Of a stretch of 64,000 bases of DNA, positions 8,392-46,916 are shown one piece after another. The stretch spans positions 2,666,001 through 2,730,000 of the forward strand of contig NC_135767.1 in the NCBI RefSeq assembly GCF_052425735.1, written 5' to 3'. The DNA is from Oculina patagonica (Eukaryota). Under the pieces are notes generated by a model that worked only from the letters and a program-made list of their open reading frames with translations, was not told the origin of the DNA and ran no database searches. The first letter of the stretch is position 1, and each line of letters opens with the position of its first letter. The translations under genes and the position numbers were made by a program.

Positions 8392-8460
8392 CCGCCGCCT
8401 GGTTAGCTCAGTTGGTAGAGCGCCGGACTGCTGTGCGGGAGGTCGTGGGTTCGAACCCCA

Positions 8461-8501
<41 letters not shown>

Positions 8502-40423: not shown

Positions 40424-41044
40424 ATGAAGAGCGCAAGCGAGAATCCTAGCGGGAGAATCTTGAAACACGGCTACCTACTGAAGCAAAGCGAAGTTCTGAA
40501 ACAATGGCATCTCCGTTATTTTGTGCTCAGCAAAGAATGCTTGTGCTACTATCGTACAGAGAAGGAATCGTTAGAAAACGCACCTAAGGAGGTTATATTC
40601 TTCAATGACATGTCACTGTATATAGATGAGTTGCCAGAAAAGCAAACTAAGTACTGCTTAAAGCTCGTTAAACGGTCGCTATCTTCTAAGATCACTGCAC
40701 GGACGTTTTTCTTGTGTTGCTTCTCTGAGCATGAGAGGAACGAATGGCTGTCGCAGATTCTTCAAGCAAAAGCCATCGCTTTGGTCGTCGACCCAACTGC
40801 GTGGATGGGGAACCAGGAAGCTTCAACAGAAGAAATGGACTTTGAGCTTGCTAATTCTAGCAGCAGCGCGAAGCTTGCCTCCGCTAAAGAGATCTTGCAA
40901 AAGTGCCGACGCAAGCTCTCGCTTGGTGGAAACCCGAGGGATTCCCCGAGTTCCTTATTTCTGGATGACTTTAGCTTAAATAGACGACGTAAGTCTACAC
41001 CCCGCTTGAGTCAAGAGTGGAGAAACACGTTAATGGTTCTTTAG
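40424..41044 (+). CDS. Intronless single-PH-domain protein (paralog B)
   Basis: PH signature KHGYLLKQ...WHLRYFVL...ERNEWLSQI; collinear with paralog A through the C-terminal WRNT(I/L)MV. Confidence 0.92.
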   Translation: MKSASENPSGRILKHGYLLKQSEVLKQWHLRYFVLSKECLCYYRTEKESLENAPKEVIFFNDMSLYIDELPEKQTKYCLKLVKRSLSSKITARTFFLCCFSEHERNEWLSQILQAKAIALVVDPTAWMGNQEASTEEMDFELANSSSSAKLASAKEILQKCRRKLSLGGNPRDSPSSLFLDDFSLNRRRKSTPRLSQEWRNTLMVL

Positions 41045-43728
41045 CTGTACGTAGTTAAAACTGCGAAAAGAGCACTCACGGTTTTGAATTGGAAGGAAGT
41101 TTATCAGATTTGGGCAAAATTGTCGAGCAGGGGACATTAGCAAAAACATTTTTCGCATGTGTAGCGAATGTTTTGCGCAGTTTTTAAAGATTGAATGACT
41201 TTAACTGAGCTTCAACCGTACCGGAAAGTGTGCTTTGATGGGTTGAATGACTTTTACCGAGCTTTAACCATAACGGAAAAGTGTACTTAAGTTGCTCTCT
41301 CAGAAGTTCCACTGCGGTTGACGGAGTTTTAATGATTGGATCTCACTTTACACGATTTCCAAAAAAGAACTTTTGACTGGCCAATTGTCTTTAATTTCGA
41401 GGTTTAAAATTTTTATTTTTCACCGATCCGTCTTATAATTTTATGGGTTCCAATCCATGGCCAGTCATCATGAATTGAAAATACAACCAACTAATTTGTA
41501 CGTTAACTTAAGCTTATATTATCAAATTCTCCTAACTAGTACCATAAGAAATGTATTGAGACCACTAAGGAGAATTTGTTTGTTTACAGTTGTACACAAT
41601 GTATTCGATATTTATAGTCTACCACGATGATCGTTGTTCTGTAAAACCGAAAAAAGTACATTTTGTTATTAACTGAACACTATATTGACATGATGCAAAG
41701 AAATTTTATGTGGAAAATGTCCCCTTTATTTCAACAGTAAGCATTGTTCGGTTTTCGCATAATCCAAAAGAAAAATACTTTTACTTTCAGAATTTTTCCT
41801 GTCAATGTCGGTGACAGATGAAGTATCTGTGCTATGCTGCGCAGTATTTATAATCCCCAGTTTCATGAAATTTAGAGCTATTTAAGGAAATATAAATGAG
41901 AGATGTGCTATCCATATGAACAAATGTAACAATTTCAGTTTTGCGTTAAGGTACATATTCAAAGAAAAACTGAGAAATATACGGACAGTTTTGTGTTAAT
42001 ATCACTGTGTAAAATAGTTCGTAATTTGAACTACAAAAAGATAAAATGATGTAAATTTATCGATCCAACGAAAGATAATAATAAAACATCATAGCAAATG
42101 TATGGAGTAAATTGATGAAACAGTGGCCATGCATGCGAAGTTAAATTTAAGGCACGTTTTCGAAGCCTGGGAAAAAACCCTTACACTAATTGAGTGTATC
42201 GCTAATGAAGTTGATAAACAAGTGTATTTAACAGATTTAAGTTGTTTTCCAAGGTTCGGCTTATCTCCACAAAAATTTCACGTTTTAATTAAGTTTGGCT
42301 CTCTGCCATTATTGTTTTTCGGAACATAGCCAGTGAAGAATGACTCTAATTTGTTTTTGTGATTCAAACAATGTTCGGCATTATGTTTGTGACAGATGTA
42401 TCCAAGATTAAGTGATTAGCTATGATGCCTTTGTCAAAAAGAAAACTTCCAAATATCTTTGGCTTTATGCCAGTATTGTCTGAGAAGAAGAGGCAGTTAT
42501 TTTCTCAAGTGTTTTGTTGTTTTACCGTTGTAGGCCGCATCAAAACAATCTCGCAGGCTACATATGCTTATGGTGTTTTGTTATGACAGTGGGGGGGGGG
42601 GGGGAGAGGGTGTAGTGCGTGAGGGAGAGGGGACTGGAAATTGACCCCTCATTGAACCTGCGCGCTACACGCTGAAGGTCGCTATGACTTACAATGACTT
42701 TTGTGAGGTTTACTCCAAACCAACTTTTATCGTGCAAAGAGTCCATTGCTTAGCCGAGTATAAATGGACTCTCAATGCACAATTTTCCTGTGAATTCGCA
42801 AGGAATATCACCGACGGGGTCGTATGCATCAGATATCGTAGGATATTTCTTATGTACGGATGACAGATAACAAAAACCTTTTGACCTTATTTGGGCATCG
42901 TGACAATTTGTTGAATAATAATAATGTGCATCTGTTTGCCTGCCGTTAAATAATCATACATAAACTGTATTTCCGCTTAGCAACCATTTGGGCACTACTG
43001 CGCACACTCTTTTTCTCGGCACCTCTCAGTCCAGTTGTCAGTTCTCAGCAGACCCAGTCCTCTAGGCCAGTTGCTCCTCTCCCCTCCCCAACTGGAGGCC
43101 CATGAAACTCTAAAACGAAGGGCCTCAACAGTGCATTTTAAGAACTACAGCATTCACCCAATAAACACTTCGTAGCCCTACTGCGGTCGTCACTCTGTAC
43201 TGGAAGGGATTTTGACACTTGTTTTATGCTTTTGGCGAGTCTGCTTTTTACGACTTTTTACAGATTTTTCTACTCTACCGTCATTTGCATCTAACCAGTC
43301 CGGGACATGTCGCAAAAACATGCCCTAAACGTGACGCTATTGCCGTTTTAAAGATGCATTTAATGAACGTTCGCTCTCGAGCTAAGGTCATGATGTTTTT
43401 TTAGAGGCCAGTCAGTTACTGATTTACATGTGGGCTCGACGTCCAAACGCGAAGGACAAAACTCGGCTTCCCCTCCCCGCCACATTGCAGCATTTGCGCA
43501 AGAGGGGACTTACTTTTGCTCCGCCCCCATTTTCTTCCAAGCAGAAAGGTATCAATTTTTACTTTGTCTTACTTTGAGCCCCCTGCTCAATCCATGACTA
43601 AGTTCTGGGTCATTGCTGCTCACAGGCCATCTTTATTCAAAAGCTTAGAGACACTACCGCTTTCTGGAACCCATTTAGTTCTAGCACACGCTCATACCCT
43701 GAGATCAGGTTTAATTTTTTAAGGCTAA

Positions 43729-44103
43729 AACTGCAAGGGACAGCAAACGATAATGCTGCTATTCGTAGGATCTACTGAGAGATCTGATCAGCAATAAAAT
43801 AAAAAACCAACCAACTGCAAGCAAGGATGATCAAGCGACGTGAAACTGTAGACTTTGTGAGACAACACCACGACTAGAACAGATACAGCAGGATTGCAAC
43901 CGCAGACAGCTGTTTCGTCCTTATTGGGACTCTTCAGTGCGGTGTAGTGAATCTAAATGACGCCAGCTCGGAGAGCCAACGCAAATTAATTGCCCAATAA
44001 CTGCAAGGGACCGCAAACGATAATGCTGCTATTCGTAGGATCTACTGAGAGATCTGATCAGCAATAAAATGAAATAACAAACAACTGCAAGCAAGGCTGA
44101 TCA
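43729..44103 (-). mobile_element. Candidate non-LTR retrozyme / Penelope-related repeat, about 1.4 units of 270 bp
   Basis: 43729-43833 is repeated at 43999-44103 (period 270); the part between the repeats holds a hammerhead ribozyme. Confidence 0.75.
43899..43943 (-). ncRNA. Minimal type I hammerhead ribozyme
   Basis: Minus strand reads ACCGCA CUGAAGA GUCC-CAAUAA-GGAC GAAAC-AGCU-GUC UGCGGU: perfect 6-bp stem I, CUGANGA core, 4-bp stem II, GAAA, minimal stem III with a palindromic loop, and a GUC cleavage triplet. Confidence 0.9.
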
Positions 44104-45546
44104 TACAAACTTTCATTCTTTTATGCGACCCCGGAAAAAAGAGCGTGACCTTCTGCCTGCTAATGCGTGGGTGTCCTGTGTTGTCATATCCTCGTACCCA
44201 GTTCCTTTGGAGTGGAAGCCGCCGGCAGAAAGAGGTTGGCCATCTGATACGGACACGGCAAGAGTTATAAGCCCAAAATCAGGAAATCTTGTAAGTTATC
44301 TACAACTATTTTACCTCTGGTGATAACTTAAAATGTATTAATAACCAAGGAAAGTAACTTTTCCTTGATCGAGATTCGTACAGACCACTTAATGTCGGCG
44401 AGTATTTGAGCTTACTCTGTTAACAAAATCGATCGATGTGAAATGGATCTTGTTAACCTGTTGTCATGCAATATCATATTTAATTTGCTTTTGCGGATGT
44501 ATATGCTACTACTTTTACTTATTAACGTTCGCATGACTGCTAAACGAGTGGCAAGTTTTTAGTCGAAATTTCATTCGGTTTTTGATCATGCATGCATGAT
44601 ATGATATATAAGCTTATCTCCATGGGGCTTTTGTTGATTTGTTGAATGTTTGTATACATTTAAATTCGTCAGGGTTTATGTATCAAAGAGCTACAATATT
44701 AAAACTTTGATGTAACTGCTTCACTTGCACCGGAAAAGCTCTGTAACCAATTTGCTAAAAAAAAAACATTATTTTATAAAGTTTCTTTTAATTAATTTCT
44801 GCTCAGTGTGAAGTCCATCTTTATTAAAATTTTTGTAATCTGATTGGTTGCCTGGCAGACAGATCTTTTTATCTGGATTGCTAGTGCTCATGTAAAGCTG
44901 TCTGCATGTAATTTTTCAACAGACTGTGATCTGATTAAAAAGTAAGGCGGGAAAGTATAGTGACTTTTTTGTTTGTTTTGCACTGCTTTACAAAATCAGG
45001 CCATGGATATATCAAATCGAACAGGGCATAAAAAAATTTAACAATTATCCTGCGAAATCGTGCAGAAGATCGCCTGTTACTAACTAAAGCCGAACGGGTT
45101 AAAATCAGACGATATTCTACAAGATTGAGCTGCAGGATAATAAATTGTTTTATTATTTGACAAATTGTCAACAAAACCCATTTTGCAGATAGAAAAACTG
45201 TAACTATGCAGCGCTTTACAAGTCTTCGGACGAATCTTCCCAACTTTCATATATCGCAGGATATCTGTTATAAATCTCAGATGACAGATATATAACATTT
45301 TGACCATGTATGGGAAGCACATGCATTTGTGAATAATAATGTCTGATACCCGTCGTTCGATTTTGTACCATGTGATGTGTTTGGTCCAACTATTGTGTGC
45401 AAAATTTAATTGGTGGGTTGTAAATACCTCTTATTAATCGACTTATGGCCCAAGCGCGAAGCGCGCGGGCCATAAGTCGACGGGAAAAAAACGAGGATCC
45501 GTATTTTACAGTACGGACCGAGAAAACGAGGTTAATAAGATATTTA

Positions 45547-46061
45547 CCGTAAATGATCTAATAAACGCCCGGGGCGTCTATTAAATTTTTGGGGTCCTAG
45601 GGGAGGCGTTAAATAGATATGAGGCGTTTATTAGAGAGAGGCGTTTATTTCAATTTAACAGTAGCAACGTCAAGACAACTAATAGGATGGGTAGTTTTCT
45701 ACTGGAGTAAGATACATAACAGAGTTTGTAAGTAGGAGACTAATCTAATCTGCGCTAATGCAAAGCCTTGAGATGCCGTTCATAGTTCGATATCGACGTT
45801 TTTTATCGTCATCGGGGTTAACCATGTTGGCGTTGTTGGCCTCTTCGATGTCCGAGTCAAGCAAAAAACTAACTTTATTGCGTGAAATTACTCTATGGAG
45901 CATTTCCTTGGTTTTTGAGATGATTCCTGGAGGGGGGCGTCTATTAGACACGGGGCGTTTATTAGAGAGGGGCGTCTAATACAAACTTAACACCTCAGAG
46001 GGGGCGTTTATTAGATAAGACGCGTTTATTTGAGAGAGGGCGTTTATTAGATCATTTACGG
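45547..46061. mobile_element. TA-targeting (Tc1/mariner-like) MITE nested in the Crypton remnant
   Basis: TA|CCGTAAATGATCTAATAAACGCC ... GGCGTTTATTAGATCATTTACGG|TA, perfect TIRs. Confidence 0.88.
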
Positions 46062-46463: not shown

Positions 46464-46916
46464 CTACTTAAAAAAACTTAGCTCTTTAAGGCGGCGTTGA
46501 ATGCTACGTTGAAAGCTTGAAATGCTGTCTGGCTCGTACTCAGCTCTATCGCGTTTGCGTACGTCTCCGAGGAGCTTATCGAGGACGTCAGCAGGTACGG
46601 TTTCTACATGAAATGTTCCATCAGTCTGCTCTTGACAATAATTGTCGAACCGTTTCCATTCACTTTTCGTCTTCTTGACCGTGTTTGCATATTTCTCGGC
46701 ACTGATGAAACTTTCAAGTTCTTGACTTGAATCCTGCTCGGGTTGCTCTAAGTCCGCCACATCAGGGAAGTTTTCTCCTTCCAACAGATCACAAAAATTG
46801 AGTTTAAAGTTCGGTAGACCTTCTTCGCTTCGCCTTTGTTCCTCGCTATTTTCCTCTGACTGCGAACGTTGTAGCAAGTTTTGAAAATCTTCTTCGCGAG
46901 ACATTTCAACTTGCAA
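46464..46916 (-). pseudogene. Truncated Crypton/DUF3504-associated (ZMYM/QRICH1/KCTD1-like) N-terminal coding relic
   Basis: FISAEKYANTVKKT...LDKLL...VRKRDRAEYEPDSISSFQRSIQRRL resembles the N-terminal region of CryptonA recombinases; no catalytic half is present. Confidence 0.65.

Follow-up and report, generated by a model that had tools for sequence, protein, structure and literature searches.

At positions 43729-44103 of the 64-kb window (the whole 64,000-nt stretch of DNA that was analysed), a single hammerhead ribozyme motif is enclosed by a direct repeat, which raises the question of whether the repeat delimits the unit of a ribozyme-bearing mobile element or came about in another way. 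A first-pass annotation had interpreted the locus as a 1.4-mer insertion of a non-LTR retrozyme family making a ~270-nt circular RNA, with the hammerhead lying between two direct repeats of ~105 bp at a period of 270. The repeats have the described form: they are 105 nt each, 94% identical and spaced 270 nt apart. Features of the locus are as follows (pieces 1 and 2 are defined below).

43729-43833: left 105-nt direct repeat, part of piece 1
43999-44103: right 105-nt direct repeat, part of piece 2
43899-43943, minus strand: type I hammerhead ribozyme motif (RF00163 profile match and complete core)

An Rfam search matched the minus strand of 43899-43943 to RF00163 (Hammerhead_1) over all 45 model positions with 42.4 bits (gathering cut-off, 34 bits; E = 1.2e-8 in a 4-kb search and 1.9e-7 for the whole 64-kb window), and this was the sole ribozyme match in the window. 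The RNA reads ACCGCA-CUGAAGA-GUCC-CAAUAA-GGAC-GAAAC-AGCU-GUC-UGCGGU and contains all of the hammerhead core (CUGAAGA, GAAA and GUC), a 6-bp stem I (ACCGCA/UGCGGU), a 4-bp stem II (GUCC/GGAC) with the loop CAAUAA, and a stem III of 2 bp within the palindrome ACAGCUGU. The intact hammerhead read from the letters, with every conserved nucleotide, stems I and II and a palindromic stem III, is therefore also recovered by the Rfam model, at full length and above its cut-off. Cleavage is predicted 3' of C43905, between 43905 and 43904, the same position as in the first-pass annotation. Matches to Yfr19, mir-35_2, suhB and sR19 near the element in the 4-kb search scored far under their cut-offs and were thus taken as chance. 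The only other RNA family match in the window is a tRNA gene at 8397-8469 on the plus strand (RF00005, 39.2 bits).

Relatives of the 270-nt stretch are numerous in the window's own genome (529 Mb, 14 large contigs), and the period of 270 is absent from the 29 loci examined. In nearly all of these loci, similarity begins at the base equivalent to window 43720, beside unrelated flanks, and most copies run on beyond the base equivalent to 44001 into a conserved 231 nt that the window does not have. Mapping with loci L015 and L007 as queries gave a full unit of 511 nt (L015:1491-2001), and further full 511-nt copies are found at L009, L010, L013, L016, L025 and L027. The unit (44.8% GC) is numbered here on the hammerhead strand, with 1 as its 5' end and 511 as its 3' end, and carries one hammerhead at 288-332 with the predicted cut at 326/327. 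Where units lie head to tail (L013, at C14:11069239-11070025, and L014, on C5), their hammerheads are 520-524 nt apart. Two hammerheads or hammerhead-containing segments stand in tandem at three of 26 independent loci (L013, L014 and L025); both motifs are intact in L013 and L014, and one matched the motif search in L025. Two family-specific words, allowed up to three mismatches, occur at 90 and 114 places in the whole genome with none for the controls, so the family has about 100 copies. A lack of other genomic copies with a conserved core had been named in the first pass as grounds for giving up the ribozyme element; other copies do exist, and a conserved core is kept among them.

Two pairs of copies share identical flanks, L007/L008 (C4:7689384 and C4:7678224, 11 kb apart) and L002/L023 (C14:15632635 and C14:15563084, 70 kb apart), and are thus segmental duplications carrying the element rather than separate insertions.

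Alignment with the full unit divides the window locus into two overlapping pieces.

43720-44001, minus strand: piece 1, an old 5'-truncated copy, unit 232-510 of the ~511-nt element, aligning with L015:1492-1770 and 25 other copies
43999-44109, minus strand: piece 2, a younger fragment close to the consensus, from the 3' part of the element, unit ~391-501
43999-44001: junction of the pieces, AAC on the plus strand (GUU in the RNA), which fits both pieces as a 3-nt microhomology

The 3' end of piece 1, at 43720, is the constant terminus of the family. Its nearest relative (the best genomic match) is 93% identical, and its hammerhead agrees letter for letter with that of L004, which belongs to an older subfamily. 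Piece 2 (111 nt) has neither the hammerhead nor the final 10 nt of the unit; many copies match it over this part at 98-100% identity, and it carries the sequence common to young copies. Private differences number 16 in 282 nt (5.7%) for piece 1 and 0 in 107 nt for piece 2; within the shared 107 nt, on which the age contrast is based, there are 8 private changes vs 0 (p = 0.008, Fisher's exact and binomial tests). With an 81-nt query across the repeat junction, for which 40 of 176 candidates were scored, 43 matches were obtained; among these the junction is spanned in the window only, and each remaining match covers one side of it. The genome-wide search for 270-bp tandem multimers suggested in the first pass thus yields a period-270 junction in the window alone among the matches scored, and the family does not form the 150-450-bp head-to-tail hammerhead repeats by which retrozymes are recognised, its unit being 511-520 nt and the 270-nt period private among those matches.

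Predicted RNA folds also separate the window from the full unit. For L013, the 520-nt monomer from cut to cut has a folding energy of -198 kcal/mol vs -142 +/- 6 for shuffled sequences (z = -8.8), with its 5' and 3' parts pairing together, whereas the 270 nt of the window, for want of the 231-nt 5' body, are no more stable than their shuffles (z = 0.05). Among eight full copies, double changes occur in two hammerhead pairs only and nowhere else in the long-range fold. The first-pass model of a 1.4-mer from a family with a ~270-nt circular RNA, here taken as copied by rolling reverse transcription, would explain a period-270 direct repeat enclosing a single hammerhead, and metazoan retrozymes of 170-400 nt are known (PMC7229834). 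The family unit of 511-520 nt, the junction confined to the window among the matches scored, the different ages of the pieces, and a 270-nt stretch with no excess structure nevertheless make a 1.4-mer of such a circle scarcely credible.

The manner in which copies were inserted is visible in their ends. The 3' end is fixed at ...GUCUUAC (GTCTTAC in DNA) and is followed by 0-6 nt of CUUUUA (CTTTTA), a tail that looks like variable priming by microhomology, and the 5' ends are spread over unit 1-477. Partial tandems, consisting of a 3' fragment, 9 nt and a unit, are present at about 8 of the 26 independent loci, and the duplicated stretch in most of them is 54-124 nt long and excludes the hammerhead. 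An inverted 5'-truncated copy abuts the 5' end at about 15 of the 26, and the complete canonical layout of tandem plus inverted copy is seen at L016 and L024. The inverted arm has its outer end at unit ~419-434 rather than 511, which amounts to an extension on one end. A constant 3' end with 5' truncation, together with partial tandems and inverted copies, gives the family the insertion mode of Penelope-like elements, for which 5' truncation, partial tandems, an inverted truncated copy at the 5' end and one-end extension are all described (PMC8557442). Comparison of the flanks of 12 copies and of the window gave no convincing target-site duplications, the longest common words being 4-6 nt. Among the copies mapped, 5' ends do not cluster at the predicted cut (unit 326/327), so that nothing in them links cleavage to copying. 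The unit also contains a 72-nt imperfect palindrome at 137-208 (L015:1794-1865; ~80% self-complementary), whose hairpin is the longest in the predicted fold. Inverted copies often break at this palindrome (L016, L017 and L021 have 5' ends at 137-138).

No RT or GIY-YIG ORF was found in the unit or within 1.5-kb flanks at 29 loci; ORFs neighbouring sampled copies correspond to a P450, an RmlD-like reductase, a LINE tail domain and a tyrosine recombinase. The family therefore resembles retrozymes, which are non-autonomous with no ORF in or beside the unit, and is unlike autonomous Penelope-like elements, whose RT and GIY-YIG ORF is lacking in and beside its copies. Insertion scars of the Penelope type combined with the absence of such an ORF near the copies identify a non-autonomous element, and we infer that a Penelope-like enzyme mobilised it. 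The first-pass annotation had allowed that the locus would be an ordinary Penelope pseudo-LTR if all copies adjoined an RT/GIY-YIG ORF, and none of the 29 loci has one within 1.5 kb. That the locus is what remains of a pseudo-LTR from an autonomous Penelope-like element, with the ORF lost here, is accordingly very unlikely: at many loci full 511-nt copies have host genes and unrelated sequence at their borders and neither an RT nor an endonuclease ORF, even though hammerheads occur in Penelope-like pseudo-LTRs (PMC4209133), GIY-YIG domains are abundant in this genome, and one family relative (C3:27450218-27452422) lies 1.8 kb from a GIY-YIG match.

GIY-YIG domains number 860 candidates in the genome, often as inverted pairs, and all 150 of 150 that were scored exceeded the cut-off. 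Twelve GIY-YIG loci contained no hammerhead at the Rfam gathering threshold and had no similarity to the unit except a 43-nt core-like match. In Chlamydomonas, similarity between the 3' ends of the non-autonomous Chlamys elements and their autonomous partner is documented (PMC8557442), whereas none was found for the present family among these 12 loci. At L060, a hammerhead lies 2.7 kb upstream of a GIY-YIG match, and the downstream stretch has no RT-like ORF. Two places are candidates for an autonomous partner: C4:51594488-51598111, where 3.6 kb separates two diverged 3' modules of the family that are inverted relative to each other, and C3:27450218-27452422, where the relatives form an inverted pair and the GIY-YIG domain is on the same strand. 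Separately, at least 10 places (C3:1323294, C3:16302769, C5:25727195 and C6:17966754, loci L069-L072, plus six more) have a GIY-YIG domain of 40.2 bits each inside a 1371-aa open frame. This looks like a young, intact element, conceivably a Naiad-type one whose endonuclease is N-terminal; no hammerhead was present within 1.5 kb of the four places examined (L069-L072).

Taken with the two pieces and their ages, this anatomy makes it probable that what the locus contains is the dead, composite remnant of a non-coding retroelement family with ~100 copies and a unit of 511 nt (520 in tandem). The RNA strand of the element would be the minus strand of the window, and copies would be made by target-primed reverse transcription in a Penelope-like manner, with the RT/GIY-YIG enzyme presumably borrowed; copying of this kind accounts for a constant 3' end, for 5' truncation to varying extents, and for partial tandems and inverted copies that abut. 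The first insertion would have been the old copy, whose 5' truncation lies at unit 232. Later, a short cDNA (unit 391-501) was most likely primed at the 5' edge of that copy through the GUU/AAC microhomology, and would have started 10 nt short of the RNA's usual 3' end. The join of the two pieces created the private 270-nt period. Two insertion events with the old truncated copy first is the simplest reading and is held with moderate confidence.

A single event would instead have reverse transcription stall at unit 232, jump through GUU to position 501 of a second RNA and stop at ~391, so that both pieces would be of the same age and the changes private to piece 1 would have been inherited from a source copy that had already diverged. 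Penelope-like partial tandems are usually explained by template jumps, the family has many canonical jumps (39x-511, then 9 nt, then 1-511), the junction has its 3-nt microhomology, and the upstream fragments of L009, L010 and L027 likewise start at 388-396. The 8 vs 0 private changes in the common 107 nt (p = 0.008) are difficult to reconcile with equal ages, and the private changes of piece 1 are in no sibling copy, the best genomic match being 93%; a single event is therefore considered unlikely, though not negligibly so. In the favoured reading of two insertions, new cDNAs may more generally prime, by preference and through microhomology, on the edges of resident copies, so that the hammerhead-bearing tandems of Penelope-type elements and retrozymes would be built by stepwise "self-homing" and not in one rolling-circle event, and rare tandems such as L013 and L014 may release structured, hammerhead-processed RNAs of ~520 nt, possibly circles, that seed the family. 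This extension is offered as speculation. The window locus itself, which has a single ribozyme and lacks the 231-nt 5' body on which the long-range fold of the unit depends, would release no monomer or circle, in agreement with the first-pass view that its single ribozyme cannot excise a monomer.

Conservation of the ribozyme was assessed in 42 family copies, which reduce to 13 distinct 45-nt hammerhead variants. When the variants are set against the hammerhead structure, pairing is kept in 96% of cells, and double changes occur in five of 14 pairs, comprising A-U/G-C and C-G/U-A in stem I and U-A/C-G, C-G/U-A and C-G/G-C in stem II. None of 500 shuffles reaches these values and slid controls collapse. 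Compensatory changes among relatives, as expected of a type I hammerhead, are thus present in stems I and II. The pattern of the hammerhead motif has 319 exact matches in the genome vs 0 for a reversed control pattern. Stem III, ACAGCUGU, is invariant in the family and is common to the other hammerhead families of the genome, which are set apart by further compensatory changes.

As a hairpin, stem III has 2 bp at most. In cofolding, two motifs are predicted to join as a double hammerhead whose 8-bp helix III is intermolecular, at -35.3 kcal/mol vs -29.6 kcal/mol for two monomers (2 x -14.8), and the predicted catalytic fold of a monomer reaches only -9.7 kcal/mol, 5 kcal/mol weaker than the alternative fold. 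Metazoan hammerheads of the short-stem-III kind are viewed as acting as dimers (PMC4209133). The invariant, palindromic and short stem III leads to a prediction of dimeric cleavage, and from the modelled energies the family hammerhead would cleave only as a dimer.

Judging by the pattern of changes, selection on the ribozyme would have acted on the source copies of the family. At 5.7% divergence, zero changes in 45 nt have a chance of about 7%, so the intact motif in the window requires no selection. This bears on the proposal that the host recruited the lone hammerhead to cleave antisense transcripts arising upstream of a neighbouring gene, for which the motif is suitably intact, on the minus strand and to the left of a possible exon-like stretch at ~44120-44290. 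Besides the chance value, a single motif of such architecture is predicted to be a poor cutter (cofolding; PMC4209133), and the element is separated from the proposed SSUH2 stretch by a TE-like ORF and tandem repeats, leaving host use with a probability close to nil. To the left, the nearest recognisable coding stretch is a PH-domain ORF of 206 aa at 40424-41044 on the plus strand (PF00169, E = 5.8e-18), with the element 2.7 kb downstream of it. To the right, a 150-aa ORF rich in acidic residues and with no Pfam match is located at 46464-46916 on the minus strand, with 18-nt tandem repeats nearby at 45603-45649 and 45930-45978.

Transcription of the family is suggested by contigs from polyA RNA-seq, in which the element has high word depth and the unique flanks of L013 are uncovered. 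One 187-nt RNA-library contig spans the unit-to-unit junction; these data are contigs that carry neither strand nor molecule ends, are compatible with DNA carry-over, and are no proof of circularity.

Metazoan non-LTR retrozymes generally measure 170-400 nt, and those described in the coral Acropora millepora 220-245 bp; they are found together with Penelope-like elements and regarded as non-autonomous derivatives of them (PMC7229834; 10.64898/2026.07.22.740005). The present family is similar in being non-coding, with a type I hammerhead of classical helices, a GC content below 50% (44.8%), a highly self-paired unit RNA and co-occurring Penelope-like elements, and differs in its unit of 511-520 nt. 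The retrozyme assignment made in the first pass is thus right as to the class, a non-coding, Penelope-linked hammerhead retroelement, but not as to a 270-nt unit. Copies of the family are mostly solo, truncated or inverted, with tandems of up to about two units seen, unlike long head-to-tail retrozyme arrays. Newt satellite 2 and Schistosoma Sm-alpha are likewise dispersed or tandem non-coding repeats bearing a type I hammerhead with a weak helix III, and the newt satellite 2 hammerhead works as a dimer; both belong to other phyla, have other unit sizes and have no sequence relation to the family.

The short palindromic stem III, which by modelling implies dimeric action, is shared with the hammerheads of Penelope-like pseudo-LTRs (PMC4209133). 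Unlike those pseudo-LTRs, the duplicated part of most family tandems excludes the hammerhead, and the helices are of classical type I length (6 bp and 4 bp), unlike the Penelope-like "min-HHR" with its long helix II. Chlamys elements, such as MRC1, are also short and non-coding, with pseudo-LTRs and head-to-tail insertions, but have no canonical hammerheads (PMC8557442).

The element class is already known in corals and other animals, and the locus is ordinary: as a decayed copy of a described class it has little importance by itself. A published survey of Acropora millepora reported 16 hammerhead families (PMC7229834), and the letters of the window motif do not occur in the portion of that paper's supplement text that was available. 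The locus does carry a caution, in that a direct repeat around a hammerhead need not equal the retrozyme unit, and the real unit has to be established by comparison among copies. The family itself is a small, clean example of a non-coding element with Penelope-type scars, an apparently selected hammerhead and a 520-nt RNA predicted to be strongly folded, and could help in testing how such elements are copied.

Near one family copy, L005:988-1081 forms a near-perfect hairpin to which several unrelated microRNA precursor models match on both strands, all far under cut-off (mir-609, for example, with 55 bits vs a cut-off of 98); it is probably a small fold-back repeat and not a microRNA. A second hammerhead family accounts for 25 of the 30 best-scoring loci, which carry an identical 45-nt motif of 50.8 bits (examples L032-L056, at about 1501-1545 of each). 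It is very young, is ~68% similar to the present unit from the hammerhead through the 3' end, and has a tandem spacing of 554 nt (C4:4735745/4736299 and C4:60429995/60430549). Spacings of 377-379 nt are seen in other hammerhead families of the genome.
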